Shown here one piece after another: positions 13,798 to 58,648 of a stretch of 64,000 nt of DNA (within the stretch, counting starts at the first letter, position 1; each line of letters starts with the position of its first letter). The position numbers and the translations under genes were made by a program. The notes beneath the pieces were generated by a model. The model had not been told where the DNA came from and searched no databases. It was given only the letters and a program-made list of their open reading frames with translations. The DNA comes from Macrostomum lignano (lineage: Eukaryota): positions 124,001 through 188,000 of the forward strand of contig NIVC01002183.1 of the NCBI GenBank assembly GCA_002269645.1, in the 5' to 3' direction.

Positions 13798-14090
13798 GTG
13801 TCATCTCACTTAAATCCATATACTAGAAATGAAAATCTTGCTTGTTTGTTTGTACGAAATGCAACCCGCTAATTTATATAACAGCTAGTAAGAAATCTCC
13901 GGGTTGTATTTAACTACAACCCGCAAATTGCCCATAGACATCAATACTGTATTGGGGGTGTGGGCGCGAAGCCATAGACATATTTTATAAAGACAGACAG
14001 ACGACAGATAAATAGCAGGAAAGCCTCACTGAAACAAATTTAACTTCAATTAATTGACTCAAGTTAATTTCACTTTAACTGAAACAAATA

Positions 14091-15255
14091 ATGGCAGAAC
14101 TAAGACTTATTTTAAACCCGTTGGTTGATTATTCCAAAGACTACGTCGGAGACTATGATCCAAATGTGCTTACGATGGACGATTTAGACCTACTGCTGGA
14201 CGCTAGTGCAGATTTGCGGAACCCTACGCATTGCAAGAGATGCGATCGTCGCGTGAAGAACCTGGTCCATCAACGTTGCCAAAGGACTTGACTCTCGATA
14301 TGGTTCGATCACTTAACGAGTCGACAAAGCCTGCCAATACCGCCAATCGAAACAAGTGGTCCGTTGGCGTCTATGATAGGTGGCGCTCTGGGCGTTCCAA
14401 CGTGCTGTGCAAGAACTTAGCGATGATGAGCTAAACGAATACCTTCCTGTTTTCATTCACGAAATGACCCGTGCCGATGGGACTCAAAATCCGCCAAACA
14501 CACTCGTGTCGATTGTTGATAGTCTGCAACAAACTATCTGCAAGGTGCGTAAAGTTGATTTCTTTCGCAATGAGCGATTCAGCATTGTGCGTGAAAGTCT
14601 GGACGCCGCCATGAAGATTGGGATAAGAAATGGCTTAGGACTAGCCAGGAAATCTGCTGAAGTTGTTGGCTACGAAGATGAGGAGAAACTTTGGGAGAAA
14701 TTGTTTGGCGACAAAGATCCTACGAGTCTGATCAGAACTTTGTTTTATCTTAACGGCTTGCATTTTGCTCTACGTGGCGGTCAAGAACATAGTGCCCTGT
14801 GCATTTCGCAATTCAGTGTGCAAGAGCGAGAGGGACAGAAATGTCTTGTTTACCAAGAGATGGCCACGAAGACGAATGCTGGTGGATTGCGCGACACTCG
14901 CTTCAAACCAAAGGAAGTTCTTCACTTCGCCAATGCAGCCAATCCGGAACGTTGTCACGTTCGGCTTTTCGAGCTTTTTAAGAAAGTCAGGCCTAGCCAG
15001 AGTAATAGATTTTACCTTCTGCCGCTGAGGCAACCATCGGAGAAGCAATGGTACTCGAATCGTCCAATTGGCAAAAACACCCTGGCAAAGTTTCTGCATG
15101 AATGTGCACTGAAGCCGAGATTTTGGGCCACAAGACTAATCATAGTCTACGCGCTACGTGTGCTACACGTCTTTACCAAGCTGGCATTGAAGAAGACCCG
15201 CAAATTTTCGTTTTCCAGTTATATTCATAATCTCGTTTTTTGTCATCCAGAATGA
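14091..15255 (+). pseudogene. Crypton tyrosine recombinase (DUF3504-like), frameshifted and 3'-truncated
   Basis: LFYLNGLHFALRGGQEH, WYSNRPIGKNTL and, in a shifted frame, TNHSLRATCATRLYQAG. The final GH...Y segment is missing. Confidence 0.9.
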
Positions 15256-15906
15256 AATATAAAATATACAACCCGAAAAAATACAAATTCTAGCTCGATG
15301 TTTTGTGTCTATGGTAAAATTACTCTCTTCCGGGCTGCGGTTATTATTTCAGCACTGCTGTTACACTTTACTTATGTCTTGCGTTGTGAAATTCGTTGAA
15401 TTTGTATGCCTCACTTCTGACTACAAGTATCTGATAGAAATATCCAGATAAGTATAAGTTATTACCCGTTTATTCGTTTCTGTGGCAGGGAGCTAAGGCT
15501 GCGGATTTGGAAGCGAATTCAAAGCCTTAGCTCTCGGCCGTAGACTTGAATAAACGGGGAATAATATATTTATTCGTCACTTCTCTATTGATGCTGTCTG
15601 TGGTTAAAAACACTAGAGAACATTACACTAACAGTGAAGCAAAGAGAGCTGTTTCTTCCTCACTTGGCTGGGCCGTGTCTATGGTTCAATGCTTTTTTCA
15701 TTTCTTTGGCCTGGTCCAAGTTTGGAAGAAATATATTCTTTCCGTTTCTTTCTGTCTATGGCCCAAAGTCCCCGGCTTCGAGCTTGCTTCTAAACCTCGG
15801 CTGCGCCTCGTCCAAGAAACGAGCTCTCAGCCGAGGAATTCGGGCCAAAGAAGGGAAGAAACGGAAAGAACTTATACTTCTTTTCGATTCCCTCTATTCA
15901 TCAGCC

Positions 15907-18841
<2,935 letters not shown>

Positions 18842-19589
18842 ACTACGTTTGGCTGATCCGTATTGACAATATGGCTACTCTACATGCTCCCCTATTAAAT
18901 TCATTATTAATTGCATTATAGTTTCCAAATAAAACTCGTTTCCACCTTTTATTGGCCCGCTTCTTTGGCCCGGTGCCTTTTTCTATGACTCGGCCAAAGA
19001 AAGAAATAAATGTGCGACCAAGTGGGGAATAAGTATAAGATAAAATCCCCCCCCCCCAGATTTGTTTTTTTGGCGTATAGAATGGTTGAGGAGGCCTAGA
19101 AGCGCAGTCCGAAGCCATTCTTTACGCCATAGACAGCAAATCTAGAGGGTGTTATCATATTTGAACCTAAGTGTGGCTCGGCCAGGCACTGTTCTGCACT
19201 AGCTGATTTCACGGCCCGGCCGTGAAATATTTCCTGACCCGGCCATAAAATAAAATGCGTTACATACAATAGACACTGGACTGAGCCACACTGGGGATTA
19301 AACAGAGATAAAGGCTGGGGCACAGCAGAAAAGTTTTTCTAAGTTATTAGAACATTTATTATTAATTTGTCAATGGTGTTTGCTAGGCTGAATTGCCTGT
19401 TCGTGTGAGCATCACTAGAGAGGAGACTCTCGAGAGATATAGCAACCGATAAATGAAATAAAAGCTGAATCTGAGAGCTCGGCACCTGAGAGGTGAGAGG
19501 CCGAACTGACTTACAATCGAACAACTACGAGCTATCAATTGAGATTAGAGACGAGAAATGTTGCTAGGTATACTGTTGTTAGGCCTCAG

Positions 19590-21248: not shown

Positions 21249-21765
21249 CCATAGACTAGGACTTTCCTAAGCTTAAAACTATATCTGTAAGGGACTGTTT
21301 TCTAAGACAGGAGCAGAAAAATTCGGCTCTCGTCTCAATGTTGGAAATCTTTGAATGGAGTTAGCGACAACGAGCTAGCTTTAATACTGCACAAAGCTCT
21401 ACGGATCACAACGACGAGGACGAACTAAAGAATTTTATTAACTTTCTCACGGATCTTCAGGCAAACACTGAAGATTATGTTTCGGGAGTCGAATTGCCAG
21501 AAGTACCCGAGTCCGTGGCTGCCGACATGGACAAAGTCGAGTTGGACTCGTTACCGCGATCTACAAAAAACAAATTATGCAACAGGGAGGTTGACTTCAT
21601 TCGCAAGCATACAGCTGAAGAGGTAGAAAACGTGACAAAGGATAAGATTGGGGACTATCTTCGTTTTTACTAATTTGGACTAAAGAAAGCTGATGGAAGT
21701 CTGTGTTCGCCTGCTACGCTTGTGTGCGCTCGAGCTGGTGTGCAGCGTTACCTTAAATTACATTA
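21249..21765 (+). pseudogene. Crypton (third subfamily) 5' fragment
   Basis: SSTDHNDEDELKNFINF...MDKVELDSLPRSTK, then KKADGSLCSPATLVCARAGVQRYL. Starts at a CCATAGAC. Confidence 0.75.
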
Positions 21766-22330: not shown

Positions 22331-23428
22331 CCATAGACAAAACAATTTCCTCAAAGTCTGTCTTTGATTATGTTATGCGATTCTTAAAAATTAAAACACC
22401 CTATTGGAAAAATCTTTCCGTGGACTCGCTAAACGGAGTCAAGATGGACGAGTTGCAACTGCTGTCTGAGCTTAGTTCAACGGACCATCACGATGACCAG
22501 GCCTTGCGGGATTTCATTGATTGGATTGAGAACGACCATGGAACTGAAGAACTGCCGGACCTGCCGGAAGTGGATGGCCTCAATGAACAGTTGATCTCGA
22601 CAATTCCCACGAGCTCTACCGAACGACAAGGCTGGTAACCTGCGCATCGCTACTCAACAAGTACGAGGCATAAATTGATTTAACTCTCTGATGAAACGCC
22701 TGAGCCAGCGGTGCAGCTTGTCTCGAGAGTACACCAACCATTGCATACGAGTGACGAGAATCGCTGACCTGAAAGAGAAAAGTCATAGCCTGAGTGACAT
22801 CATGTGTATTACCGGGCAAAAAAGTGAACGAACTATGCGGCGCTACCGATCGAGCCGTCTTCACCCCTTCGACGGCTATACGCAGTGCCTTGGAGCGCCC
22901 AATAGACTCAGCCGAGCAACCGACAGTCAAAAAGACTCCCAGTCTGAAGACCAGTGCCAAAACGAAATCCCCAAATGAACTTGTCACCACAAGCCAAGAA
23001 GTGCATCTATCTAGCGGTAAGTCAGGCAACCATGCAGTCACAGAGAGCTCTTATTAGTAGGAAACTTGAGAAGCCTAATTCAGGAAAAATTATTCTTGCA
23101 TTTGCAGTGCTAAATAGCCAGGGTCAGGTGTCCAGCATATTCGGGAACTGCCTCTTTGAGAACTGCACCTTCAATTTCGGGGCGAGTAAGTAAACATTCG
23201 CTGTAAAATGTTGACTACAAACTGACGAAGTGTGTTGCAAAAGTTAAGCTTAATTTAATATATTTTTTATGCTTTTTGGCGTTTTCAACATTGCATTTGT
23301 TCGATATCAATTAATAAATATATGTGTTCATTTTTTCAAGGAAGCCTCTACTGTCAAATTATTCACAGGTTTATCTGTTAAAATACACTTAATAACAGCT
23401 ACGTTATTTCAAATCCTTATGTCTATGG
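22331..23428 (+). mobile_element. Internally deleted Crypton (third subfamily) bounded by inverted CCATAGAC...GTCTATGG
   Basis: N-terminus SSTDHHDDQALRDFIDW joined to YTNHCIRVTRIADL...ITGQKSERTMRRY, ending FGNCLFENCTFNF. Confidence 0.8.
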
Positions 23429-25311: not shown

Positions 25312-25999
25312 AACCGCAACTTTAGGACTTTCAGGATGTACCTCCAGTGTTTTTCTGATAAATTTTTCATTTTTCTGTTAGAAATATCCAAGCTCAAGTT
25401 TTACGAATGTTTGAAAATTGCCATTTCAAAAGCTGCACGTTTACCTTAAACAGTTAACAATTTGGATCTGTGCTGGCGTCAGTAACGGGCTGAGGGCTTA
25501 TTTGTTGTCTTTTCCGATATGACTACTGCTCGTAGTAGTGCTACTGTTAAACATGAAGGATTCATTTCTCCATGCTGTTAAACTGTTACATAAATACACT
25601 TGTTATGAACTTGCTCCTATTTGATTCGTTGTCTATGACAATCGCAAAAGTGTTAAACAATAACGTTTTGATATTGGTATTGCGTCGAAGTGAAAGTTTG
25701 CGACAATGGTAGATTGTCAATGGTAGAACCGTGTGGACACTCGCATTGTTGTATGGCCTGTCGTATGCCTGATTGTTAAGCAACGCCATGAGCAACACTT
25801 ATGCCATGGCGAGACATAGACAAAAAATTTATCAAACTTAGCATTATCTACCTTTGAGTCCGTATATATAATATTATTGTCTCATGATTTCGCAGTAAAA
25901 GTATGTTGAATAATCTGTCATTATTAAATGTTTGATAATGCATGTTTAAACTTGGATTATGATATGAGCCATAGACGTTGAAGTTGGACTCAGATAATG

Positions 26000-26797
26000 C
26001 CATAGACAATTAAAGTTTTACCCAGAAAACAAAGTGGGTAGTGTTAGACTAAAACTAAGTTAATAGGATTGAGCAGAGAATTCGACGACTGCAATACTTA
26101 TAAGCAATGTCTGCTTCACACCTTATCAGCTGGTACCATCTGCCAGCTGATAGTCTCCACGGCGTTACATCCAGCGAATATTCTTTCCTTGCGGAGCTTA
26201 GCAGTGCTGATCACCGAGAAGATGCCCAACTGGAGGATTTCATCCACTTCATTACCGATCATTCGCGATCTAAAGAGCAGCTGCTTGGTGTCGTTCCACC
26301 GGACTTCGAAGAAGGAAAAGATTTAATTGCTACGGACAGCATGGATAAGGCCGAGTTGGATTCGCCACCGTGCACAACCAAAGACTAAATTTTCTCCTAC
26401 GGTGACGTGTTTGTCATGCCACTCGCGACGACTGATCATTATCCATCTCCGAAACCTTTTTGGCTAAGTAAAAAAATGTCTCCAGTGTCTTCTCAGGCTG
26501 CCACTTCTCAAATTGCACGTTCAACTTAAGCAATTAGGCCTACAGTCGCTAGTAATAGATCGTCTGCTTTGTTAGGAAGATGCTTAGGAATTAAGAATAC
26601 TGAGCTTAAAATACATCAAAACTTACTGTTCTATTCTGTATTGTACTGTACTGCTTTCAAACGTACCTTTTGCAAATTTCTCAAAGAATGCCATTTTTGT
26701 GTTTTCGTGCATAATTAACAAATATGCTTAAACGTGTATTATATTGTATCACTAGTTTTACTAAATATAAACCCTGTTATTTGACCATAGTCTATGG
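26000..26797 (+). pseudogene. Crypton (third subfamily) 5' fragment between CCATAGAC and GTCTATGG
   Basis: AELSSADHREDAQLEDFIHF...MDKAELDSPPCTTK, homologous to the 21355 and 22444 N-termini. Confidence 0.7.
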
Positions 26798-27389: not shown

Positions 27390-27652
27390 TCATTGGGCTA
27401 AAGTGTCCAGCATCTCTGGGAACTGCCGCTTTGAGAACTGTACGTTCACTTTGGGTGAGATATTGATTATCGTATCTTTAAATCTTGACTACAAACTTAT
27501 GAACTGCACTGTGACATTTATCATGAACTCTTATGTGTAGCTGGTACTTTAGTTTGATTGATTTTTTTCCTTTTGTTTATTTTCTTCTTGTTGTTCTGTA
27601 TTTATTGACAAAAGTACTCTGCGATGAATGTTTTGCATCCAAATGTCTATGG
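27390..27652 (+). pseudogene. Crypton (third subfamily) 3' end
   Basis: GTGTCCAGCATCTCTGGGAACTGCCGCTTTGAGAACTG resembles 23128-23170; ends at GTCTATGG 27645. Confidence 0.65.
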
Positions 27653-27934
27653 TGTACTAAAAAACTGTGGAATAATGACCGAAAATTGTTTCAATTGTTT
27701 GCTTGTGTAAGTATATGTACAATGGGGATTATTTTAGCCAAGATTATTCCGTGGCCATTATTACAGGAGAGAAAAAGGGGTGGATTAAAGCATTGACAAA
27801 AAAGCGAAGAGGCAAGAGCTCTGTTTGGGAGAGAGAAGAAATTTAGAAGGTTTGCCGATGGGCCATAATTTTAACAGAGTATATGGGTTGGGTTGAACCA
27901 TAGACAAAAAGCGAAGAAGAAATGAGCTAAGATC

Positions 27935-28888: not shown

Positions 28889-31800
28889 TTAATCAGCTAG
28901 CAGCGAGCCTCTTTTGGCCATAGACAATATTCTTAAGCTGTTCTCGTTACTGTCTCTAAAATCGAATAAAGCCAAAGTTAGAGCCCGTCAAGGGTTTACA
29001 ACCGCACTATCTCACTTCCACAAAATAAATTCCACTGCGTTTTGATTTACTCGCTACAAAGTGGTAGCAGAGCGTTTGGTATGGAGGACGAACAGCAGCA
29101 GCCGTTAGCGCCCGAAGCTGGAGCCCTGGCGAAACCAGTACAAGAGGCCTTCGTGCAATGCATCGCTATCAAACCTCCCGCCTTCTACCGGAAGTCGCCT
29201 GAGATCTGGTTCCGGCAACTGGAATCGCAGTTTACTCTGGCTGGAATCACCCGCGCTGCGACCAAGTTCCATCATACGTTAGCGGCCCTGCCTGAGGACG
29301 TTGCCTGCTCGATCGACCTAGGCACAGAGGACTACGCCTCGCTTAAAACATCGGTGCTAGAAGCTTTGCGCACCAACCGACACCAACGAATCGAGGAGGC
29401 CCTCGCCGCGGTGGAGCTCGGGGATCGCCGCCCATCTCAGTTGGTAACCGACATCAAGCGGCGATTCAGCGAAGTAGGCTTACAAGTCGATGACAGCATT
29501 ATCAAGTCTCGACTCCTAACTGCACTGCCCACCTGGCCCACATCCGTTCCGCCTTGGTCGGTCACGAAAAGGCGGAGCTGGACGCGTTTGCGAAGATCGC
29601 CGACAGCATGCTGGCTTGTGTCGCCGGTTGTGCCACCCCGTACGCCTCTGTAAACCGCACCTCGGCCACCGGCCAAGAGCACCCGAGAGGCAACGCTGGT
29701 TCTTTTCGTAGCAGGAAGCCCGACGACTCGCGCTCCAACCGGAACTCACGCCGACGACCCAAGATCTGCAACGGTCATCTCTACTACGCCACCGATGCTC
29801 GCACCTGCCGACCATGGTGCCAGTGGCCAGGCTCGAAACCGCCGAAATTTTTAGAGAGCCATCAGCCCACTAGCCCACTCCGGCTCAGTCCCGGGCGTCT
29901 AGCCCAACGCCAAGCCAGGTGTCAAACTAGTTGGTCACGTGCCTCGGCCGAGCCGCGACCCGTCAAAGGCCACCACGCTGCTGCTTCGGCCAATGTTGTG
30001 TCACACTTGCTATCCCCGGCCTTCGTAGACCATACCCTGTGACGTTCATTGTTACTAGTACTGCGCGTTCGACATCTTTGCGTTCGACTCTCTGTTCTTC
30101 TAGTGATTCAGTCCCTCAAATCAACACCACCACGCTGCTTGAGCCCACCACACCGCTTGCTTGGTTCCCTTGAGTTCTGGAAGCTCCGGACTACACTGCA
30201 GCATCCGCCACGTCGGTTCGACATCGTATTGAGACCACTGGCGAGCCCATTTTTTGTCGACCGCGACCGCTTGCCCCTGCCAAGTTCGCGGTTGCAAAAG
30301 TGGAATTCGACAAGCTCCTGCGACTTGGCATCGTCCGCCCCTCCGCAAGTCCGTGGGGCTCCCCGTTTCACACAGTAAAGACAAAGGACGGCTCCTGGAG
30401 ACCTTTCGGAGACTATCGAGCCTTAAACGCGGAAACCGAGCCAGACCGCTACCCTATCCCTAACATCAACCATTTACATCATCAGCTGCACGGTGCAAAA
30501 GTTTTCAGCACCCTTGACGTCGTCAAGGCCTATCACTTCGTTCCAATGGCAAACGAGGACATCGAGAAGACGGAGATTCACGACGGTACACATTGACCTG
30601 GTCGGACCGTTACCGCCTCCTGAGTCTGAAGATCCCGGGCCGAAGCCTCGCTACCTACTCACCATTATCGATGCCTACTCACGCTGGTTCGAAGCAGCAC
30701 CGCTTTCGAACATTGCCGCCACATCAGTCGCACAAGCCATCCTGGACACCTGGATTTCTCGGTTCGGCCCACCTTTGACGCTGATCAGTGACCAGGGATC
30801 CCAATTCTGAGCGGAGCTCATGAAGAACTTGAAGGATCTACTCGGCATCCACCACATCCGCACTTCAGCCTATAATCCGAGAGCTAACGGTATCATCGAA
30901 AGTGCACACCGGACGCTAAAGGTCGGTTTGAAGGCGCGCGGCAAGAACTGGCTGCAGTAGCTGCCCGTCGTGCTCCTGGGCATGCGCATTTTCCCAGATG
31001 AGTCAGGTGCCTCTCCGTTCTCCGTTGTTATGGGTGAGCAACCGTTGGTCCCACCAGTCGTCACCGACACTTCTGGGCTCAAGGAGCTCTCGACTAGTCT
31101 ACGAGCTACATCAGCTTTTCTTCCCATACCGGCAGCCGAGAACGCGAGAGATCTCGGGAGAGAGCCAAAGCGAGAGAGCCAGCCGCGCTGAGTTCGTGCA
31201 CACACGCCTGGTTGCGGTTGGACCGTGTGCGACGGCCCCTGGAGGCTCCTTACCAAGGCCCGTACGCGGTACTGGACAGGCAAGACACCAAAATGACACT
31301 CAAGATCAACGGCAAGCCTACCGTTAGTGTCGATCGATCGTGTCAAGCCCGCCACCCTACCAACAGCCCAACAAGAGCAGCCAGCAGCTACACCGGCCAA
31401 GCCAAGCGACGCGCCCGCCTCTAACACAAGGTCGCGCAGCGAAAATCGCGTGCTATTCAAGAGCGAGACCTCCGTGCAAATCTTATAGAAGGACAGTCCA
31501 CCTAGCAATACCCGACAGTGTTCATAAACTGATCAACCTATTGCTGTGGCTATAAGCCAAGCCGAACTATAAACAAAATGATTTGCTTCCCAGCGCACCG
31601 TACGCTTTAGTGATTTACGCGTAACAAGAGCAAGCTAGGCTTGCAGAAATAAATAATAAGACAAGAGTCGAAGATCGGCTGGTTAATTTAACATTTTAAG
31701 TTCCAGATTTGCTCATTTGATTTTTCATTAAAAAAACAGAAGACACAACACATATGACCTCTGCATTGCTTACCTACTCGTTCCCCTGCGCTGTTCGAAA

Positions 31801-32044
31801 TTTTGTCTCGGATTATCTAATGCATAGTGATGTACTTCCTCTAGGAGGGGAGTATCTTGTAGCAGTGAGAAGCATTAATCAGCTAGCAGCAAGCCTCTTT
31901 TGGCCATAGACAATATTCTTAAGCTGTTCTCGTTACTGTCTCTAAAATCGAATAAAGCCGAAGTTAGAGCCCGTCAAGGATTTACAACCGTTCTATCTCA
32001 CTTCCACAAAATAAATTCCACTGCGTTTTGATTCACTCGCTACA
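28889..32044 (+). mobile_element. Gypsy LTR retrotransposon, internally deleted, 5' LTR truncated
   Basis: LTRs 28889-29058 and 31858-32044 (TGTAGC...GCTACA, about 6 differences). Gag IKPPAFYRKSPEIWFRQLESQF, RT GDYRALN, integrase VHIDLVGPLP. Purine tract ~31843-31852. Confidence 0.95.
29062..29075 (+). other. Primer-binding site complementary to initiator tRNA-Met
   Basis: TGGTAGCAGAGCGT immediately after the 5' LTR. Confidence 0.75.
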
Positions 32045-32256
32045 ACCTCTACTCGTATACAGAATTTTTTAAATCGGAATGAGAAAGCAGTAAAACGTTT
32101 TTTTAAAACGAATTTAGTTCAATTGAACCAAAGTAACAGCGATACAGCACCATAATTCGCATACCTGGAAGTGACACTGGGTCCACTGTTGTATTGTTGT
32201 CTATGGTATACCCAAGAAATATATCGTATTGATATAAATACATCGCAACAGCCACA

Positions 32257-33986: not shown

Positions 33987-34259
33987 CTGTGCTGATAATT
34001 TCGATTTTACGAAGCACTGATAAAAGATGTTGCTTGGTCGATAAGTAGCCAACCAGTGCGTAAAATTTTGTGAATGGATTGAAGCTCGCTTGCTACCAAA
34101 TTTCGAAGTTGGCCCATAGACAAATAAAACAAAAGTCGCGACAAGTAGAAGGGGACAAGAAATCGTCTCTTAAAAGTCGCTTTGTATTTCTCCATTTCTG
34201 AGTGGAAAGAGCTCACTAGCTTTCTTGGTTCGCCACTGTGACTCAATAGAGCTTGGGCC

Positions 34260-35579: not shown

Positions 35580-35642
35580 GATTTTGATATTTATCCTGCT
35601 TCGAGGGTGGATTAAAATTTGCTTGATTTTATGAATCAGATT

Positions 35643-38060: not shown

Positions 38061-39556
38061 TTACTCGAAAATAAACTGCACAACATTCGTTTCGCCGTTT
38101 GCCAAAATCTTCATCCGCTTAGTGGGGGCTGCTACAAGTGTGGTGGTCGATTCTTCAACAACCAGTGACTTCTTGACAGTTGACATTGACGCTGATCCGC
38201 ACGGGTCGGTAGTCGCAACAGCCCTTGTAGGAGCGTCGCTCAGGGCGCACGGGTCGGTAGTTGTAACAGCCCTTGCAGGAGCTTCGCTCAATGTAGAACT
38301 TGGTGCCGGCATAGTTCCAGCTAGAGCGACTGTCAGCTGATCACTCATCCCTGCCATGATCGAGTCCCTCTTCTTGCCTCTCCGGATGTATCGTTCTACC
38401 GACGCGCTATTCTGTGAATAGAGGTGGTGTTTAATAAATTCCTTGTCCATGTGTCAATAAACTTACTAAGAATAAAGAATTGCTCACCTTGTGACCTGTC
38501 ACCTTCGCAATTTTTTTCGACAGAAAAGCCAGCTTCATGCAGCTCCGTAACAACTGTAGGTCGCACACAATGCGGAGTGTACAGCTTGGACAGGTTAGCA
38601 TTCGAAGAGATCTTCTTGAGCAACGGCCCCAAAGTGTTGATTCCAACTGGTACTTTGGTGTACCAGATGCCATCCGCATTCACTCGTGGTTTCGGACGCA
38701 GAAAGAAGTCCTCCTGATTCCAACCCGGCACGGCAGTAATTTTCGACAAATAAAGCTTTGAGGTGCTGCCTTGCAACTCGATCGCCATAGCTCCGTTTGA
38801 TAGGGCCTTCTCTCGGAATGAACGAACAGTGAGACCTCGTAGCCATTCTCTGCCGCGATTGCCAAAATAAAATAACACATTGAAATATACCTCTTCTTGC
38901 AAACGTGTTGGAGTGCTTCTGTCGAAGTAAGAAGCAAGCTTGACAAGGTCGTCCGACTCAATGGCTTCGTAATGCTGCACTCGACCACCGGACTTCAAAT
39001 ACGCATTGCAAACATTCTTCACCATCAAATTCGCGCTATGAAAAGCCTCGTGAGCGATGATATTGAGGCCACGTAATTTCATAAAGTACCTGAACAGTGC
39101 GGCTCGAATTCCTACGATTGTATTCGGCGAATAGAAGCTGCCGTCTGACTTACGCAGAGTCGCATAGAAGTAGCGGACCCATTTGGCAATTTCTTCCACC
39201 GAAGCAGTCGCGTAATCCACTTTTAAATTATTCTCCGCCAACCAGGCCGTCAAGCGGTTGATCACAGCTTTCTCCTTAGAGACAGTCGAATGACATTCGT
39301 TGTCGCTTTCCAGTTGAGCGGCCAGACTTTCCAATTCGTCAAGGTTACACAAGGTTTCCGGATCCGAGCTGAAAAGTTTCTCTAATTCCTCGCTGAACGT
39401 GCAATCCGCTATCAGTGCAGTCAAATCGTCGCCCGTCCTCTCAAAGTTGCTGGACACACTTTCAATAAACATTTCGTCGCCACTTAATCCAGACACCGTA
39501 GCGTAGCGAAAATCAATTAATGGAGGATTCAGAGCCGAGTCGATTACAGACGCCAT
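38061..39556 (-). pseudogene. Crypton recombinase (second subfamily) with a 76-bp intron, a 1-nt frameshift and a probable core deletion
   Basis: FGNRGRE, YTPHCVRPT, VTGHK|NSASVERY across GT-AG intron 38412-38487. An extra A in the A7 run at 38511-38517 shifts the frame. Ends KRMKILANGETNVVQFIFE. Confidence 0.85.
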
Positions 39557-40135
39557 AGTCAATAAGCTTTATACACTTTTCTATAAACTCTCCACTCAAT
39601 TTTCATCTCTTCTTAACGTTTCTCGAAAACCGTGCAGGAATGACTTTGTCTATGGTCAAAAGACAATGATTTTCTTCGTGCTTTTGCCATTGACGCACTC
39701 GTTTTCGTGCAGGAATATTACATTGTCGGCTGATTTTCCATGCAGGAATGGCATTCTTGCACTCTTTTGCGTGCAGGAATGGATGTCTATGGTAAAATCT
39801 CACTGAAAAAGCATTAGGCGCAGAAATGCATTCCTGCACGGTTTTGTGCATTCCTGCACGATGAATCATCCGACAATGGAATTCCTTCACGTTCACTCGT
39901 GCGTGAAGGACATCGTGCACTCGTGCATATGTCATTCCCGCACTCGTGACCGTGCAGGAATATATCAGTGCTTTGTAAAATGGAGATTGGTAAGTGCTTC
40001 GTAAAATTGGCCCCAGAAGCAACCGTGGTGAGGCATCAAAAGACGTCTATGGCCCAACCTATCTCAAGAATTCGTTTAGCAGATTTAGCAAGTGCAGCGT
40101 GGTAGAAGCTTGTCTATGCAGCGAGCGAAATCACC

Positions 40136-43020
40136 ATGAATCATAACGAGACGCACATTCAGTTCAACGCTTTCGTTCGCTCTAAGCTTGAAAAATCTGC
40201 AGCAGAATTAGAGGAGGATCTCCGGACCACACTGCCAAACAACTGCCCAATTTGAAGGACAATTTACAGGTGGTTTCAGCACTTCAGTAGTCCTGCGTGT
40301 CGCCAGATCTGGTCAATCATGTTCAACCAGGACGACAGAGAACACCGACGTCTTCAGCGACCAAGTCAAGGAAGACCCTAGACAGTCGGTCAGGGAGCTA
40401 GTGGACTGCTTGGAGATGGATTTCAAGACAGTCTATTATTGCATCCTGACAGAGGATCTCTATCTCCGCAATGTCTGCTCAGTCTGGGTGCCCCATGAAC
40501 TCAATGCCGACCAGCGGCAGGCTCGTATGAACTGCGCCAAGCAGATCCGCAAGGTGTTCAGCGACCAAGGCTTGGAGGAGATTCTAAACTGCCTGGTTGT
40601 TGAGGATAAAACCTGGCTCCACCTGAATGGGAAAGGCATCAAGACACACAATCGCTGCTGGCTGGGTGCTGGGGACTCCAGGTGAATCGGATTTGACCGG
40701 AGGGTGCGCCAGAGATTCCCAGACGAAGTCAATAAAGTACTGACCATAGAGGAAAGAATATAATGGAGGGCTAATCTGAGCCAGTTATTTTTGTTTCGCT
40801 CAATCTTCACTTTTAACATCCCTTTCCCCCCGTTCCTTCCTATTGGCTCGTCACTGCCATAGACAAACTCGTTCTCGTCTCGGTTTTTTGTTTTCGCCCC
40901 CACTGAAAGGAATGTCACAGCCACAGAATATAGACAGAATGCCCGATCAGCCCTCTCACAGAAAAATCTGCCGCAAAAAGTATTTGCATATTTAGCTACT
41001 TTTGTGGTGAAGAAAGATAGTAGTCACTTATACTTACGCGTATGCGGCTTGGGGGGGGTTGTGCCATAGACGACTGAGACTGCAGTCTTATATATATATA
41101 CTGTATATTCTGTGGCCGCTGCTGCTGCTACTGACATGAATAAGGCAGTGGTTAGCGGCAACCAAGGCACCAACAGAGACAACTATAACAGTATGACAGC
41201 ATCAAGAATGCACTGCATATAGCTGCCAGAACTACGCAAACAAATTTCCTGCACAAACGAGATTTCATCGATTCCCAGCAAACCGTGAAAGGTACGTTCA
41301 TGTACCGTCAGATAAATTCCACGAGCCGCGTGTTGGCGCCAGTGTTAGAGCTTTGTTTCTCAGTTCAGTTCAAACTCTCATACGAACTCATTCTGATGAG
41401 CACAACAAACGCTGTACTATATTGGTTTAGCAACGCTGTACACCAATCTGAGGCTCCACCATTGGTGCAACAGTTCTGGCGCAGAACAGGAAAAGCAGAA
41501 GAGGGACTGCACTTGTACCAGTGCAGTGCAGAGAAAGCTGAGGCGACTGAACGCTGATTGAGGAATGTAATCGATTGGGGAAAGTGTACATGTAATGTGA
41601 ACTGGAGCAGCGAATACATGTTGGAGTAAATTGGTGAATTAATAATAATAATTAAATTATGTTTCAAATATGTTATTTGTCTCAAATAAATGATTGGTTG
41701 AAACGCCTACGGTTTTATTCCAATTTTGGCACTGCCAAACCCGCTAATTTTCAATTCTGGAGCAATATCTACTTTTATAGAATCACACGCAGAGTCTATA
41801 TATATACATATAGAATTTTCATAACTACTGCTCTGCTTCACCACAAAAGTAGTTTGTTTGCATTTTAATTTCCAACCATCACGCGACAGCCGATCGGGCA
41901 TTCTGTCTATATTCTGTGGTCACTCACATCAAAATATGCTTTTTCAGAGTTTCAGTTTTTTTGTGTAGTACAACTAAGCTGACATGCCATTCGCTGCCAG
42001 AATCGCAGGCTCTGACATCATCATGCAACAAGGGGATCAGTCTCCTGGAAAGAGCAGAAAGCGACTCAAACCCAACTCTGTGCCTAAGCCGAGACTTCTA
42101 GCGGACAACCAGTTGGATGCTTCAACCTCAGAGGAGTCACAGCATTCTATGGCGAATCAGAATCGTCAGAAATGAAATGCAAGTCGGCTAAAGGAGAAGC
42201 TGACTGGACGAGAAGAGATGTAAGTTTACAAAAGCTGTAAAGAAAGCTGTTTCGCTCGCAGGCCAGCTCTAAAGCTTCACGCTCATACGTATGTGCTATT
42301 TGCCGAAGTTGAAGCTGTATCGCAGGCAGCTGTCAACAGTTACTTTTCGCCTGCAGAGAGTTTTGGTTGAGCTAAAAAAGATGAAGAAGCATTCAAAGTT
42401 ATACTGCAAGGCCATCGATTTCGTGCGGTACTTTTTTACGGACAGTGGGAGGATTCTGCTGAAAGAGAATTGACCTAATGTACAGAGGGACGCAGATTGA
42501 ATTTTTGTTCAAAGCCTTGCATGCTGTTTCCACGGGCATATAGTCATGCATAGTCCACGATATTACTTTCAGAGGGGGCCGGAAACAAAACACGAGACGA
42601 AAACGAGTTTGTCTATGGCAGTGACGAGCCAATAGGAAGGAACGGGGGGAAAGGGATGTTAAAAGTGAAGATTGAGCGAAACAAAAGTAACTGGCTCAGA
42701 TTAGCCCTCCATTCTATTCTTTCCTCTACTGTCAGTACTTTATTGACTTCGTCTGGGAATCTCTGGCGCACTCTCCGGTCAAATCCGATTCACCTGGACA
42801 ACGAGTGAATCTGCTTTGGCAGAGTGCCTACAGCCCGGGCTTTAACTTTTGCGACAGATTTCTGTTCAAATGGCTGAAGACTACAAGAGGAGTTTCACAT
42901 TACAAGATGACAAGCAGGCCGCGTTGCACTGGTTCTCGCAGCTTGAGGACAAGCACCTGCAAGCTGAGGTGGAGAAGCTGCACGAGCACTGCCAGAGGAT
43001 GATTGACATCTACTTTGTTG
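40136..43020 (+). pseudogene. mariner-like transposase split by a long-TIR element, middle deleted
   Basis: RTIYRWFQHF and VVEDKTWLHL on the left; AYSPGFNFCDRFLFKWLK on the right. Confidence 0.8.
40679..42796. mobile_element. Long-TIR (~250 bp) THAP-carrying element, P/Galileo-like
   Basis: CAGGTGAATCGG...CCGATTCACCTG with near-identical long arms. THAP pieces CTAYSCQN...FHRFPANRER (~41205-41290) and RKRLKPNSVP (~42057-42090). No TSD seen. Confidence 0.75.
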
Positions 43021-47640: not shown

Positions 47641-47899
47641 TTCCTGCTGAGTGCTGAGACTGTCCTAATGTTTACCGTTTCAAGTTGAAAGTGTTTATTT
47701 TGATTGTCTTGTGTTTGTTTTCGAATTTTCACTAATGGCAAGTGGAACAAAAAAGAGAGAAAATCCATAGACCATTTTGTCTGACTGAATCGAAAGGACT
47801 CGGTTGAATATGAAAGAGAGTCTTAATTTAATTTCGATCAATCCTGCGGAGGTACACTCGAGTTTCTAATTTCAAAAACTCAATCGACTCCTCGGGACC

Positions 47900-48130: not shown

Positions 48131-49511
48131 AATTAAAGTTATTTTACTTCCCAGCTTTCGAAGCCAAAAGTAGCTCCTATTTAATTTACTTAAGCAATAT
48201 GGCATCTGCTTACAAAAAGGATATTATTATTGCTTTTTGCAGTCAGTTTGAGCTTAGCAGCAGTTGGCTTAACTCACAGTGGCAGAGCGCTACACTCGAG
48301 ACAACTGCTGCCCCCAGTCTATGCCATAGAAAGTGACTGGTGAGCAAAGAATTCATCTTTGGAGCATTCACTTAGTCTGTAGCGCCTTGTTTCCCACTGT
48401 CCCTGCGTTTAATAAAAGTACTTTCTTTTGAGTGCCCACAAGCTAGGTTGTCTATGGCCCAAACTACAACTTTCGGTTTCAGCCCCAAACAAACTGTACT
48501 TTATTTTTATTAAATGGACGCGATCGCCTCCCAGCCGAGAGTTAACCTTTCGCTTAACTTAATCAATCATCTTCATCTTTTGGTAGCCAGCGTTACAATT
48601 CCTCTCGTGTCTGCTAAAGGATTAACATCGCTCTATAACCTACAAATCAGCAACAATATGAGCTTGGAAGATGAAGAGAGCGACACTATAGCTATGAAAT
48701 GGCTTCAGAGTAGCAAGGTGACGGCCCGCAGCCAAGAACATGGATAAAGATTAGCGATGAAATGCACTGCACAGCGTAGTCATTGTTCTGGAGCTGTCTA
48801 TGCTTGTACTTTTGCGTCTGGGGTTTGCAATAGCTATATGTACGTTCAATTAGGTTATCATATTTATGTTGCTCGTACGTACAGTCCCCAATTATTGATA
48901 GCACCACTTTCACTCTTTACTGATCGCCCCACCCCTATACGCTCAATCGTGTATTGAACGCTTCCATTCAGCTTATAAATGTCGACCTAGAGTATCTCGC
49001 TCAAATATACCATTTTCGTTTTTATCCCTTTATAGCTAATTGTCTCGATTCCATCTCTATATAGTTATTCTAGCAACCAATCATCGAAGCCTTGGACAGA
49101 GGTGAGCGACCAGTCGAAATCACGGAATGGACGAAGATTAACGTCAAGAGTTATTTCAATTAAACGTCAGTAGAATGAGACTGGAGTCGCACTGCCGGAG
49201 CAATTCGAAGCCAACTGGAACGTCTTTTTTAACTAAACTCCCGTCGAGGAGACACACGAATGCCTGAAAGCCGCAATCAAGCGCACGATGGCACTGGCCG
49301 GGTCCAGCGGAAACTGGCGCCCCTCTTTGATGCCGCTGTACCAATGGTACATGATCCTCATGCAGAGGATCGCCAGAGGCGACAGTGGAGGTTACGGCTG
49401 CGAAGTGTGGCTGATAGTACCGTCATTCATTGCGCCGTCTGCTAGCCTGTATTGCCGGCCAGCCAATTGTTTTATTTTAAGTTGATGAGTCCGACGAACA
49501 TTAACATAATA

Positions 49512-51256
49512 CCGTGTGCGCAAAAGGTATCCGGACAAAATCTTGTTGGCTTTGCTTTCCGAGAGTTTGACATACTCCGGGAATTTAAAGCATCATTTGT
49601 ATAATATGTCTATGGCCCAACTTCTGCCTGGAATTTTAACCCTGATATGCAAAATGGACTCATGCTGTTCATCCTTTTATTTCGAAAGCTTCGTTTTCAA
49701 TCCGCGGATTTGCCATCCCAAGTTGTCACAAAATGGCAAGCTATTCCTTGGATCTCAAGAAGCGTGTCGCTACCGACTTGACTTCTGGAATGAGCGTGCG
49801 AATGTGTGCTGAGAAGTACTCAGTAGGGAAGAGCACCGTCGGTGATTGGAAGAAGCTGCTGGATTCTGGCGACAGCCTGGAACCGAAGGAGAAATCGGGA
49901 CGGCCGCGGACAGTCCGGACACCAGACTTCATGGCCAACCTCGAAGCCAAGCGGGCAGAAGACCCAACGAAGACGATGAGGCAAATTGCCCGAGAGGAAG
50001 GAGTGCATGAGAGCAATGTCCGCAATGCATTTCGGGAGATGGGCGTCAGGAGCTTCGTGCAGAGGGAGATCCCCATGCTGAACGCGGATCAGCTGGGGCT
50101 TCGGGTTCAACGGTCACGGAGGCTCCTGAATGACCTCAAGGCCTCTCCCGGAGTTGAAGTCATCTTCTTCACGGATGAAAAGAACTTCACGCAGACACCC
50201 TACCGGAATCGCAGCTCTTCGCGCGTGCTGGCCAGGAGCAGTGAGGAGCGGGACGCCTTCAACTCGCCACAGATTAAGCACCCGGCAACCATCATGGTCT
50301 TCGGCCTCGTCGCTTCTGATGGCAAGAAAATGCAGCCAATATTTTTTGACAAGGGGTACCGACTGAATGGAGACGGGTACCTTGATGTGCTCCAGAAAGT
50401 GCTGCACTGGATTCGCAGTAACTATCCTGACAGGGTGCGGCCGGATGGCAGTTTTGCAGATGGCTGGAACTTTCGCTTCCAGCAGGACTCTGCTCCAGCA
50501 CACACTCGCAATGACGTGCAGGCCTGGCTCAGCGCTCACTTCGGGCGCAAGCGCGTCTGGCTGAAGGAGGACTGGCCAGCCTACTCACCGGATCTAAATC
50601 CCCTGGATTTTTCGATCTGGAACCAGGTTGACAAGCGGGCCTGCAGAAGCTTCCACACGTCCCTGGACTCGCTGAGATCTGCCATTCATGAGGCTTGGGA
50701 ATCAGAGCTGACTCCGGAATATCTGGTGAGATGCTGCAAAGCGTTTCGTGGTCGTCTTGAGAAGGTGATTGCCCAAGGAGGTTCTCCAATCGTGGATTAA
50801 ATCGAGTCTGGCATGCAGAGCCGCTTGTTGGAACCATTTGAGCAGCACATTTCAGCAAGTGGGCCAGGTGATTGATTCGAGGAAGTCTGACGATCTTGAA
50901 CTCTGTTAGAAAAAGCGACCGCTTCTTTAAATTAAGTTTCACTTTTGTTGCTCAATGCCCGCGTTACGTTTCTCTTGTTCGCATTTTAGAAAAAAATCGT
51001 TTTTACGTTGTTAAATCGAACACGAGCTTGAAATTTCGCGATTTACGTCATCTACCTTTAATTAAGCCATTATCACCTTTCCAGGTGAAAATAGACCGAC
51101 CTGTTGCATTGGCCACTTTGCTGAAAAACGAGCTACGACAATTTGTTGCATTAAATTGCGATGTGAAAATTCATTGATTTTGGGTACAACACGTGCATAT
51201 TTATCTGTCCTTCTCTGCAACACATGCAAGTGTCCGGATACTTTTTGCGTACCCGA
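49512..51256 (+). mobile_element. Full-length maT-like Tc1/mariner element
   Basis: 26-bp TIRs (CCGTGTGCGCAAAAGGTATCCGGACA; 4 mismatches) with TA on both sides. Confidence 0.9.
49733..50800 (+). CDS. Intact DDD transposase (355 aa, maT-like)
   Basis: FFTDEKNF, FQQDSAPAH, WPAYSPDLNPLDFSIW. Confidence 0.93.
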   Translation: MASYSLDLKKRVATDLTSGMSVRMCAEKYSVGKSTVGDWKKLLDSGDSLEPKEKSGRPRTVRTPDFMANLEAKRAEDPTKTMRQIAREEGVHESNVRNAFREMGVRSFVQREIPMLNADQLGLRVQRSRRLLNDLKASPGVEVIFFTDEKNFTQTPYRNRSSSRVLARSSEERDAFNSPQIKHPATIMVFGLVASDGKKMQPIFFDKGYRLNGDGYLDVLQKVLHWIRSNYPDRVRPDGSFADGWNFRFQQDSAPAHTRNDVQAWLSAHFGRKRVWLKEDWPAYSPDLNPLDFSIWNQVDKRACRSFHTSLDSLRSAIHEAWESELTPEYLVRCCKAFRGRLEKVIAQGGSPIVD

Positions 51257-55250: not shown

Positions 55251-55419
55251 CTAAGATCACTCTGCATTAATCCGAGAGCCACCACAATATGAACTGAAGC
55301 CCTGATCATTGAGCGGCAGAGAGGTGCGATTGACAGGTTTTGAGAAGCTTGATAGGGCATTTAATTGGTGGGAACGTGGATTTTAAATCGATTGTCCTGT
55401 TCTGTTTTGTTCTAAATTT

Positions 55420-55791
55420 GGGGTCGCTTCACAAGCTCGAAATTTCACAACCTCGAAAAGCACTTCCTTTCACAAACCCGAAACTTCATGAGCTCGAAAT
55501 TTCACAACCTCGAAAACCATTCTAGCAGCCCACTTTCACAAACTCGAAACTTCATAAGCTCGAAATTTCATATCCTCGAAAATTTTAGCAAGCGACTTCA
55601 CAAGCTCGAAATTTCACAACCTCAAAAACCATTTTAGCAGCCGACTTCACAAGCTCGAAATTTCATATCCTCAAAAATTTTAGCAAGCGACTGCTGTATA
55701 CGTTTACTTTAGTCGTCCTTGTGTGTAACCACCGTAAGTGGACACTTATTGTCTATGTGCAACAACTTACGAAGCTCATGAAAACTCGACC
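55420..55791. mobile_element. Harbinger-type MITE with subterminal (TTCACAAGCTCGAAATTTCA) repeats
   Basis: GGGGTCGCTTCACAAGC start, repeat array 55428-55700, weak inverted end at 55771-55791. Confidence 0.5.
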
Positions 55792-58648
55792 TGAGATCCC
55801 TACTGTGTATTCAATAATGCACACTTAATTATCCTATATCAATCCTGCGCATGTTTTCATTTAATTTTCTCCGTTAAGTTTACACAAAATATTTCTGTTC
55901 AGTCTGAACCTGAATGTATATTTTTGAGAATACATGTTCACCAAATATTTAACTTTCCTGTAATGCCGACAAATCATTTTTAAATTGAGGACATAGAAAT
56001 TACGAGTAACTTCTCTGTCTTAAAAATTCAAATGCACGAAAAAGCTCAAAAACACTTACCGCTCAGAAACCAGCCGAGCTTGCGCGAATTCTATGCAAAG
56101 TTAAAGATTACCAATTGCTATACATTGTTACGTACATGTAGTGTAATCTCTGAAGAGCTAATAGGAAAAATCGAAAGCTTATTTTGCTTCTGTGATGCTG
56201 ATATAGCCTCAGGGACTGTCACTGATTAATATTTGTCCTTATGAATTGGCCTACCCTGTTTAGAACTCTCAGGAAAATTTATCCTGTAATTTCAGACTGG
56301 ATCGTGCTAAAGTCTTTGGGTTGCTATCAGTTTTAAGACTGAATTTTATCGATCGATATCTAACCACCGTTTGGCGCATGCAAAGCTCAATATAGTCTAT
56401 GGCCATCGTATGCAAGTTTGATTCAAACCGCGCTCTAACATAGATTTTGACCATAGACACTGACAGAATCTACATGTATATATCAATCAATTACAGTCAT
56501 CGAGCGTACATGCTCAGTATTTATATAGCCGCCGTGTCCCAAAAAAGCTTACCATTTTAATTGACACATGTTTCGGCTCACATGCCCTGATATCTAGCTA
56601 AGCTACATACTGTGATAAATACAATATAAATATATTGCATGCACGATAAGCAATTATTTAGGCCCTAGACAAACCTATTTTTGGAGCGTTCAGAGATTTT
56701 AAAGCTATTGGCCCTAATTGCCTATCGCCGGTCGGCGAGTCCTACCAGTCTTTCTCCAATAGCCGCAGGTACAGCACAAGAAAATAAAGAACACGAGGGA
56801 ACACAAACCGAAAGATTTAGAGAGTGATAATCCTATGTGATACAAACTGATAATTGGCTAGACGATTTAATTTGATACTTCAAGTTACAAGATTTAAATT
56901 CAAAGCGGCGCAGATAACTAGAGTTGACAAAACGACGATAACGGTTAATAATAATAATTAGATTACGCAACTGGCAAGCAGATCTCAGCTGAGAAGAAGA
57001 GGAAGGAGGCACCGAACACAGGACCACGGAGAAAGACTCCTAACCCCTGGCCTAAGCCAGAACCTACACTCAAACGAGAGCCCTGCCGAATCGACCGTTC
57101 AACCGAGTACCGACTAAGTTCTATCGGCACTGCCCTTCAGTGTGACACTGAGGCCCTCGGGATCGAGGCCGCGTACTTGATCAGATCCGACTGTCTCTAT
57201 CTAACCGCGCTTAATAGCGACGACGCCAGACAAGGATGCCGAATCGTTACGCTATAAGACTGAAGCGTTCGGGCGGGGGACAAAAACACGGACCGGGGGT
57301 GACGAAATCAAAACGTCTCAAAGCGCGAACCAAAGGGAAACAGGCCACCGGCCGGGAAGCTGGACAAGACAAAACCGGGGAAAGAGAAGGCGAGATCCGA
57401 CCGCCAAAACACACTTTCATATATAGTCAAAGTCAAACCCTCACAACCCCTCAAAACCCCCCTCAAGCCGGGTGGTGGTCGTCTGGCCGGCCGCTTGCTT
57501 AAGCCGAATTGCACTGTGCCCGCGGCGCCGGGTAGAACTGGAACTTGCCGCGTGCCAGGGTCCAGGCCGGTTCTGATTGGCTGACTGCGCAAAGCTGGGG
57601 TTCGCAGACAAACTCAACCCTCCGCTGAGTCACAGTTGGCGTCTGACTTCTAACCTGTTTACGCAAAATTGATTCTAACTAACAAGGAAAAAGTACACCA
57701 AAAACGTATGACTAAACTAAAGCAAAATAACAATTCAATAACAATAATGCAAAACCTAACTAATAGAATACAAGGCTGTCGCAAAAGATGCTCACACTAC
57801 AATACCGAAAGGAAACCTGTGTAAAAACCTGTAAATTCTAAAAACCGCATTTGATTTAGGAGAGCAATCCGAAATTGATGCTGTCATGGTCTTTATTTTA
57901 AACCTTTTTTCTGCCGGATCCTATCTGAAAAATGTTTTATTAGTAGCTATAGTGACAAAACGGCTAAGAGGATAGATGTTAGCTAATGTACCTGTATTGT
58001 AAATATATTCTTTCTGGAGAAATTGCACGTATAACGTATATTTCTACATGTATATCTTAATTACCTTTCTACATATTAATATAGTACATCACCCTTAAAA
58101 CTTCAGTTGTACTTATTTCATATACAAATACAGTAGCGTGTCGAAAAACTTTCCCAGGGCAGCAGTGACGCGACCAGAAGTTTGGAGAGAGCTGATCTTG
58201 GTGCAATGCATGTGATGGGCCATAATGCAGTGAAAATCCTGGAAATGTGGAAGCTAGGTAGGCCAGTTTGGCAAAAATTCTGTTGCTTCCTTAAAGTTCT
58301 TCTGGGTCTGTAAAATGTGAAAGGCTTTGCAGACAACTTCGGGCAGTAATATTGAACAACTAATACTGCATCTATTTGATAATAACAATTCAATTTACAT
58401 TTCGTCTATCGCAGTCACCTTCGCCTTCTTAATCAGCTTGCTTTACTCGCCATGAGACAATTATGGTTTAATATAGCTTTCAATCCCCCCATAAGATTTA
58501 AATCTAAATAATACACATAAGCTCTTCTTTGTAACCAATATTTTTTGTTTAAAATTAACTAAAGGTTCATAGAAAACAGTGCTAATATTTTGAGGCGGCC
58601 CGGCGGAGAAAAGAAAATGGGATTTAAAAATTTAGTTAGTTGGTCGGT

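Follow-up and report, generated by a model that had tools for sequence, protein, structure and literature searches.

It is well known that transposons borrow transcription-factor sites from their hosts. Here we describe a candidate for such borrowing in the flatworm Macrostomum lignano, about 75% of whose genome consists of repeats: an 8-bp word, GTCTATGG (reverse complement CCATAGAC; hereafter the motif), that recurs inside transposons of unrelated superfamilies in a 64-kb stretch of the genome (assembly GCA_002269645.1, contig NIVC01002183.1, forward-strand positions 124,001 to 188,000; this whole stretch is called the window throughout). We conclude that the motif is very probably a selected functional element intrinsic to these transposons, and the role that we predict for it from its sequence and position, and consider probable, is that of a promoter-proximal site for a host factor, gained convergently by unrelated elements.

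Several described systems resemble this one in part. The CCAAT box is a sharp, short word that stands upstream of gene starts in either orientation and often twice. The motif is likewise short, sharp, often duplicated and found in either orientation, but its sequence differs from that of the NF-Y site, and the distances we report are measured to the ATG and not to the transcription start. In M. lignano itself, heat-shock elements arose independently in some long terminal repeat (LTR) families and drive heat-induced transcription (PMC12801592). That case shares with ours the organism, a transcription-factor site in a transposon promoter and independent acquisition by several families, and was studied with egg-injected LTR reporters; however, the heat-shock elements are a universal motif with a known factor and were found in 6 of 137 LTR families (PMC12801592), whereas the motif is shared by DNA transposons, Cryptons and an LTR element and is far more frequent in the window. 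In Caenorhabditis, a third of germline promoters derive from CERP2 and CELE2, miniature inverted-repeat transposable elements (MITEs) that carry the m1/m2 motif pair, with which the THAP protein HIM-17 is associated (PMC9757741). Here too a short, lineage-specific motif links transposons with promoters, and a transposon-derived DNA-binding protein may be involved, but m1/m2 was spread to host genes by one related pair of MITEs, whereas our motif is found in unrelated autonomous superfamilies, apparently by convergence and not by descent. Lastly, the nematode Ruby motif, CTGTTTCA (PMC7884074), is also an invariant 8-mer, found in either orientation and locally very dense; unlike the flatworm word, which travels within transposons, it belongs to host loci and lies at a fixed distance upstream of the 5′ U of a small RNA.

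We found no paper linking the 8-mer with Macrostomum or any flatworm, full-text matches being primer noise only, and it does not appear in the M. lignano papers on the genome, on trans-splicing and on heat-shock elements in LTRs. To our knowledge it fits none of the sites for Smad, Cdx/Caudal, Pbx-Hox, RFX (X-box), YY1, SRF, NF-Y or GATA factors, and a Cdx-like variant of it, GTTTATGG, is not enriched. The present case differs from these precedents in that the word matches no site we can name, is almost invariant and is common to at least four superfamilies, by convergence rather than descent.

Results

Frequency and sharpness of the motif

Exact matches were sought on both strands of the window, and the expected count was taken from 100 dinucleotide-preserving shuffles (mean 1.40, standard deviation 1.15, maximum 4). 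There are 40 matches, 39 of them between 13932 and 56458, in a nest of transposons, and none beyond 56458 (Table 1); the density is ~0.9 per kb in the nest against a single copy in the remaining 21 kb. An initial annotation of the window had listed 39 copies against about 1.3 expected and noted one more in the first 13.9 kb; all 39 coordinates are correct, the additional copy is that at 5993, and the enrichment is borne out. This last copy is probably there by chance, because 1.4 copies are expected on that basis. The word is also sharp. Between 13 and 57 kb, where 39 exact copies lie, none of the 24 one-mismatch variants exceeds five copies, and all of them together amount to 43 against ~31 expected, a slight surplus of the kind that decay of old copies would give.

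Oriented on GTCTATGG, the motif is preceded by T at −1 in 30 of the 40 copies and followed by a pyrimidine (Y) at +8 in 37, with A at +11 in 30, at +12 in 24 and at +13 in 19, so that the extended consensus, about 15 bp long, is T-GTCTATGG-Y-N-N-A-A-A; an A+T-rich tract of ~10 nt lies on its 5′ side. The extension had previously been read as TGTCTATGGY(C)CAA; it exists, in a looser form than was written. Beyond it the flanks are unrelated, with a median identity of 28% over ±30 nt and homology in only three pairs of copies (one LTR pair and two inverted-arm pairs), which is not the pattern of a dispersed repeat such as a MITE or a short interspersed nuclear element (SINE). When the 40 window copies are aligned, no position past +13 downstream of the motif is conserved. 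TATA-like words occupy no fixed position relative to it, and we found no fixed-distance partner of the kind that characterizes a core promoter element (e.g., a TATA box). Searches of the window for Rfam families and tRNAs found none.

Two other identities were rejected. The ATG within the motif opens only short open reading frames (ORFs; median 10 amino acids, the copy at 5993, with 97, being the exception), which speaks against a coding start, and the spliced leader of M. lignano (PMC8629364) is unrelated in sequence.

Position relative to transposon genes

Where does the motif sit within the elements that carry it? We checked 14 gene starts of Crypton, Tc1/mariner, Harbinger, LTR and THAP-pseudogene elements, using the list of the initial annotation, which had been chosen after the motif was seen, and leaving out the start at 33531. 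As had been claimed, a motif copy lies upstream of every one of these starts: all 14 have an ATG in place and a copy 37-236 bp before it, and the proximal copy is 91-163 bp from the ATG at 12 starts and 106-125 bp from it at seven. Orientation relative to the gene is the same at six starts and opposite at eight, and so is not fixed as it would be for a TATA box, an initiator or a downstream promoter element. Upstream copies are frequently paired, at irregular spacings of 31-137 bp. None of the 39 copies in the nest falls within recognisable transposon coding sequence, which occupies 33% of that region (P ~2e-7 under uniform placement). Equally, the claim that the motif lies inside the boundaries of its elements was upheld, by a copy 96 nt into the terminal inverted repeat (TIR) of the mariner, copies at nucleotides 30-37 of both LTRs and copies in two pairs of inverted arms. 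Such a location, non-coding, upstream of the element's own gene and within the element, is the one expected of a transcription-factor site in a transposon promoter.

Most of the superfamily labels previously given to these elements could be retained. The Crypton label is supported by Pfam matches to PF00589, PF12012 and PF25561 on 36051-37442, with partial matches in other copies; the PIF/Harbinger label rests on matches to DDE_Tnp_4, HTH_Tnp_4 and Myb_DNA-bind_5; and the Tc1/mariner and LTR labels also stand. What had been called a THAP gene, at 17541, is a frameshifted pseudogene whose THAP match lies below the Pfam cut-off (21.4 vs 23.9 bits), and its element is unassigned to a superfamily. 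At 33708 an ATG is present as described, while the Myb-like product read from it is not confirmed by Pfam.

Conservation in relatives and at other loci

In three cases the motif has been kept while the neighbouring non-coding sequence diverged. The closest relative of the mariner at 49733 (P0122, 74% amino-acid identity; L017) has the motif at the same offset of 96 nt in the TIR and in the same orientation, although the 69 nt between TIR and motif cannot be aligned. The closest relative of Crypton D (P0001, 67% amino-acid identity; L001-L004), which like L017 comes from contigs of runs SRR316284xx, repeats the layout seen in the window: two copies precede its ATG, the nearer at a distance of 123 bp, and a third follows its stop codon. 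These contigs look genomic, since L017 includes microsatellite sequence outside the repeat. Where the 5′ non-coding sequence of Crypton D can be aligned with that of L001 it is 59% identical and contains six identical runs of at least 7 nt, two of which are TGTCTATGG. The third case is found within the window, where two diverged copies of Crypton family 2 have kept ATGTCTATGG in a 3′ flank that is 60% identical. In the mariner comparison a second block, CGCGGAT(N)TGCC, is also kept in the diverged 5′ region, 20-70 bp before the start codon (49700-49715 in the window, ~220-235 in L017).

As controls we used ~78 kb around Crypton and mariner homologues of other organisms (L005-L012, L015-L016, L018-L023), which came from marine metagenomes, assembly GCA_012263305.1 and other runs. 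They contain a single site, in a reverse-transcriptase gene and counted twice in duplicate contigs, which is about the chance rate. By comparison, another M. lignano locus (L014) has four motif copies in 21 kb against 0.44 expected, one of them in a mariner and one in a small foldback element. In the foldback (18359-18660 of L014), whose 78-nt arms are 79% complementary, the motif stands just within the left arm; the element lies ~1.7 kb upstream of a nuclear-receptor gene. Presence in the relatives, together with absence from the homologous elements of other organisms, argues that the motif is specific to a host lineage and not to an element family, and that it is maintained in that lineage in unrelated elements.

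The Crypton elements

The Cryptons of the window also carry the motif 50-230 bp past the ORF (15307, 23421, 27645, 37556). Cryptons D and E are flanked by copies in direct repeat, Crypton A and family 2 by inverted ones. The initial annotation had wondered whether the motif doubles as a Crypton end motif, and the 3′ copies do agree with that suggestion, but each Crypton family has subterminal repeats of its own. In the flanks of Crypton E, and only there (37849-37930 and 39631-39961), the 11-mer CGTGCAGGAAT occurs nine times against 0.03 expected; it is a family-specific subterminal repeat, separate from the motif. Crypton D and L001 repeat ATATAATCCCGGAG instead. Such family-specific repeats are better candidates for recombinase sites than the motif, which, for a Crypton recombination or terminal site, should be Crypton-specific and consistent at both ends; it is not, because mariner, Harbinger, LTR and inverted-arm elements also carry it and the Cryptons of other taxa lack it.

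Other features were noted near the ends of these elements. A variant of the motif, CCATAGATA/TATCTATGG, lies with ATAAACCATAGATAA in inverted arrangement near both ends of Crypton D (35743-35757 and 37670-37684), its 5′ copy falling within a block of ~65 bp that is nearly identical in L001. Long palindromes stand just 5′ of Cryptons A (13705-13805) and D (35632-35740), with arms of 20-35 nt, a GC-rich centre, GGGCCGAAGGCCC, and folding z-scores of −7.2 and −9.4, respectively; a weaker palindrome is found at the corresponding place in L001 (20-115). These palindromes may mark a Crypton end or recombination site.

Other elements and host sequence

The intact mariner has a counterpart elsewhere in the assembly, which is Mlig_3_7 (NIVC00000000; PMC5730564) (Table 1), and the two loci are identical save for one base from ~49511 to 51200 (~1.7 kb, the end of the aligned stretch), while leftward they are unrelated. 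It follows from this identity within the element and the unrelated sequence to its left that the window holds a second copy of a young mariner-type element, and the near-identity of the two copies suggests very recent activity. The other locus (L013/L014) adjoins a Sdh_cyt gene of M. lignano. Within the mariner-like gene starting at 40136 a 2.1-kb element (40677-42798) has been inserted, with 240-nt inverted arms that are 93% identical and a nested pair of 31-nt inverted repeats inside. Around the THAP pseudogene there are two nested pairs of inverted repeats, each 98% identical (16992-17071/18524-18603 and 17340-17402/18448-18510), whose arms are contiguous on the right and split on the left by 268 bp, the segment that bears the motif at 17163. 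In the LTR element two AATAAA signals, at 28965 and 29024, follow the motif, whose position is consistent with U3.

The nest as a whole extends from 13.9 to 57 kb. It contains several Crypton families, Mos1-like and other Tc1/mariner elements, a Harbinger/PIF element with a Myb_DNA-bind_5 ORF and a DDE_Tnp_4 remnant, a separate HTH_Tnp_4 fragment and a short LTR element with gag (DUF7041), reverse transcriptase, integrase and 171-nt LTRs, as well as fragments of reverse transcriptase, RNase H and a piggyBac-type zinc finger, and ORFs resembling those of long interspersed nuclear elements (LINEs). To its left, at 1-13.9 kb, exons of a TPR-repeat host gene lie on the minus strand (479-1174 and 5703-5996) between long tandem-repeat arrays, with kilobases of tandem repeats separating the two; the repeats in 1-13000 have a strong strand skew (GC skew −0.66 to +0.30), and a homologue search with the TPR exon as query gave no match. 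To the right, at 60487-62489, GC-rich (0.56) ORFs of 249 and 262 amino acids have no Pfam match and no motif nearby; their sequence looks like LINE endonuclease and zinc-knuckle parts.

Table 1. Copies of the motif and the principal genes and repeats of the window, in order of position. Orientation is that of the motif relative to the gene named. L001-L004 are contigs carrying the closest relative of Crypton D.
Coordinates	Strand	Feature	Remarks
5993..6000	-	motif	outside the nest; its ATG is the start codon of the host TPR exon ORF 5703-5996(-)
13932..13939	-	motif	159 bp 5′ of Crypton A ATG (14091), opposite orientation
13972..13979	-	motif	119 bp 5′ of Crypton A ATG, opposite orientation
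14091..15255	+	Crypton A gene	frameshifted; DUF3504 and QRICH1 domains
15307..15314	+	motif	52 bp 3′ of Crypton A ORF end
15677..15684	+	motif	230 bp 5′ of Crypton B ATG (15907), same orientation
15754..15761	+	motif	153 bp 5′ of Crypton B ATG, same orientation; Crypton homology at 16389-16904
17163..17170	+	motif	3′ of Crypton B homology, in 268-bp segment between inverted-repeat arms
17347..17354	+	motif	left inverted arm (17340-17402) of THAP-pseudogene element, 194 bp 5′ of ATG 17541, inward
18496..18503	-	motif	right inverted arm (18448-18510) of THAP-pseudogene element, inward
19127..19134	-	motif	no element assigned; ~550 bp upstream of Mos1-like mariner fragment 19675-20157
21249..21256	-	motif	106 bp 5′ of ATG 21355 (Crypton-like), opposite orientation
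22331..22338	-	motif	113 bp 5′ of ATG 22444 (Crypton family 2 copy 1), opposite orientation
23421..23428	+	motif	~230 bp 3′ of C-terminus, Crypton family 2 copy 1; kept in copy 2
25969..25976	-	motif	138 bp 5′ of ATG 26107 (Crypton family 2 copy 2), opposite orientation
26000..26007	-	motif	107 bp 5′ of ATG 26107, opposite orientation
26790..26797	+	motif	within decayed Crypton family 2 copy 2; no element assigned
27645..27652	+	motif	~185 bp 3′ of C-terminal homology, Crypton family 2 copy 2
27898..27905	-	motif	37 bp 5′ of Myb-like ORF ATG 27935, opposite orientation; Myb_DNA-bind_5 match weak (E=0.015)
28889..29059	+	5′ LTR, 171 nt	short LTR retrotransposon with gag, reverse transcriptase and integrase remnants
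28918..28925	-	motif	nt 30-37 of 5′ LTR, 163 bp 5′ of gag ATG 29081
31875..32045	+	3′ LTR	96% identical to 5′ LTR
31904..31911	-	motif	same place (nt 30-37) in 3′ LTR
32199..32206	+	motif	154 bp beyond 3′ LTR; no element assigned
33357..33364	+	motif	no element assigned
33822..33829	-	motif	121 bp 5′ of ATG 33708(-); Myb-like identity of ORF unconfirmed
34114..34121	-	motif	146 bp 5′ of Harbinger Myb_DNA-bind_5 ORF ATG 34260, opposite orientation
34260..35590	.	Harbinger/PIF genes	Myb-like ORF 34260-34694(+); decayed DDE_Tnp_4 transposase (-), 35004-35201 and neighbouring ORFs
35823..35830	+	motif	228 bp 5′ of Crypton D ATG, same orientation; kept in L001
35932..35939	+	motif	119 bp 5′ of Crypton D ATG, same orientation; kept in L001 (123 bp)
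36051..37442	+	Crypton D gene	intact 463-aa tyrosine recombinase (QRICH1, DUF3504, Phage_integrase)
37556..37563	+	motif	114 bp 3′ of Crypton D stop; 3′ copy in L001-L004 too
37763..37770	+	motif	Crypton E 3′ flank (gene on minus strand)
37866..37873	+	motif	Crypton E 3′ flank, adjoining a CGTGCAGGAAT repeat
38396..39562	-	Crypton E gene	weak DUF3504 match; distant from Crypton D
39648..39655	+	motif	99 bp 5′ of Crypton E ATG 39556(-), opposite orientation
39785..39792	+	motif	236 bp 5′ of Crypton E ATG, opposite orientation
40045..40052	+	motif	91 bp 5′ of mariner-like ATG 40136, same orientation
40857..40864	-	motif	left 240-nt inverted arm (40677-40916) of element inserted in mariner-like gene
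41064..41071	-	motif	inside element inserted in 40136 mariner
42611..42618	+	motif	right 240-nt inverted arm (42559-42798)
47765..47772	-	motif	between DDE_3 fragment and piggyBac-type zinc-finger fragment; no element assigned
48450..48457	+	motif	no element assigned
49608..49615	+	motif	96 nt inside start of 5′ TIR (49512), 125 bp 5′ of ATG 49733
49733..50800	+	mariner gene	intact 355-aa Tc1/mariner-superfamily transposase; identical copy on NIVC01000269.1 (GCA_002269645.1)
56395..56402	+	motif	first of convergent pair 56 bp apart; no element assigned
56451..56458	-	motif	second of convergent pair

Discussion

Transcription is the one requirement common to tyrosine-recombinase, DDE and LTR elements, and it is because the elements sharing the motif move by unrelated chemistries, with host transcription as their common need, that we favor a transcriptional role for it. 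The properties of the motif fit a promoter site in that it is short, sharp, non-coding, independent of orientation, near the ATG, often duplicated and conserved in place. In the mechanism that we propose, T-GTCTATGG-Y-N-N-A-A-A would be a cis-acting site bound by a sequence-specific factor of the Macrostomum lineage; it would have been gained independently by several Crypton families, Tc1/mariner, Harbinger, an LTR retrotransposon and elements with inverted terminal repeats, and kept by purifying selection in their 5′ non-coding or LTR regions. The typical site would stand 90-160 bp before the start codon, often in two copies and in either orientation, and might act as a promoter-proximal activator that recruits host RNA polymerase II irrespective of orientation, in the manner of a CCAAT box or a heat-shock element. 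The length and invariance of the motif might point to a factor with a long footprint, such as a multi-zinc-finger protein. Convergent adoption of the site of a lineage-specific factor predicts unrelated flanks, a non-coding position, positional conservation and absence from other organisms. The initial annotation had suggested just such an adoption, and, as far as sequence can take it, the suggestion is the best supported: the motif is intrinsic to unrelated families and behaves as a selected cis-element and not as a repeat copy, since the flanks are unrelated and the motif is non-coding, conserved in relatives and absent elsewhere; that a protein binds it, that it affects transcription, that it activates and that its factor originates in the host are steps that we infer.

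Several observations weigh against this interpretation. Only the position of the motif ties it to transcription, and, with the gene starts selected as they were, the distance statistics are not unbiased. Ten motif copies have no assignable gene start, and a simple promoter role fails to explain the copies 3′ of Cryptons (15307, 23421, 27645, 37556, 37763, 37866). For many transcription-factor sites, so few degenerate variants would be unusual. Lastly, of the three host genes that are visible, one has the motif on its ATG (TPR), one has it 473 bp upstream (the nuclear-receptor ORF of L014) and one has none within 1 kb (Sdh_cyt, L014).

Could the motif be a general proximal-promoter word of Macrostomum, common at host genes? 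On this view transposons would use the commonest promoter word of their host, and nothing about it would be peculiar to them. The explanation overlaps with ours and differs from it in scope only; we regard it as possible if unlikely. The copies at the TPR exon and before the nuclear-receptor ORF, the latter one of three L014 copies that lie outside the mariner, are what it would predict, as is the rate of ~0.1 per kb in non-transposon sequence vs 0.02 per kb by chance. However, copies are far denser in the nest than in the rest of the window, the Sdh_cyt gene has no copy where one would be looked for, and one of the extra L014 copies turns out to lie inside the foldback with its 78-nt inverted arms.

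A word of host defence is, in our estimation, improbable. The motif would then be a factor site that starts transcription of PIWI-interacting RNA (piRNA) precursors, as Ruby does in nematodes, or a repressor site; a sharp 8-mer, present in both orientations, also 3′ of Crypton genes, and dense in a nest of fragmented transposons that resembles a piRNA cluster would suit such a role, and there is the nematode precedent (PMC7884074). Yet a target of defence should be lost by the elements, whereas the position of the motif is conserved over 26-33% protein divergence. The motif is, moreover, an intrinsic part of a solitary intact mariner found elsewhere in the genome, and so not a property of the locus in the window, and with nothing conserved past +13 there is no signal at a fixed distance downstream that could mark the 5′ end of a small RNA.

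Still less probable is a role in transposition itself, either as a site for a host architectural protein in assembly of the transposition complex or as a crossover or terminal site of Cryptons. The offset of 96 nt in the mariner TIR is fixed in two lineages, the motif lies inside inverted terminal arms and on both sides of Crypton ORFs, and the variant CCATAGATA/TATCTATGG is inverted near both ends of Crypton D, all of which would agree with such a role. On the other side, we know of no cofactor common to the unrelated chemistries of tyrosine-recombinase, DDE and LTR elements; in the mariner and the LTR element the motif is confined to a single end or to U3; around Cryptons the arrangement of the copies, direct or inverted, varies from family to family; and each Crypton family has separate subterminal repeats of its own. 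Finally, although the LTR pair and the two inverted-arm pairs are indeed repeat copies, a non-functional origin of the whole set, as a chance or compositional excess or as the core of one dispersed MITE or SINE, can be excluded, given that none of 100 shuffles exceeded four copies, that flanks have a median identity of 28%, that variants are at background level and that the motif is conserved across genomes.

A promoter-proximal site for a host factor thus remains the explanation that we prefer, and one may ask how far it could be extended. A single master factor specific to Macrostomum might license or mark most of the active transposon families, perhaps being itself derived from a transposon (THAP, Myb/SANT or Crypton), and serve as a germline or stem-cell switch or as a launcher of small-RNA precursors; we consider this bolder version doubtful. 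As to the particular proposals of the initial annotation, that the site is specific to the germline or stem cells and is read by a domesticated Crypton or THAP protein, our analysis provides no support for them.

Transposons are active in the stem cells and germline of M. lignano, and no other flatworm can be made transgenic routinely (PMC5730564, PMC12801592). If our interpretation is true, the occurrence of one 8-mer across tyrosine-recombinase, DDE and LTR elements, and its retention in place in related genomes, would suggest that one factor controls the expression of much of the mobile DNA of this animal. Naming that factor would then give a handle on transposon activation in regenerating animals, and the motif itself could supply a compact promoter module for transgenes.

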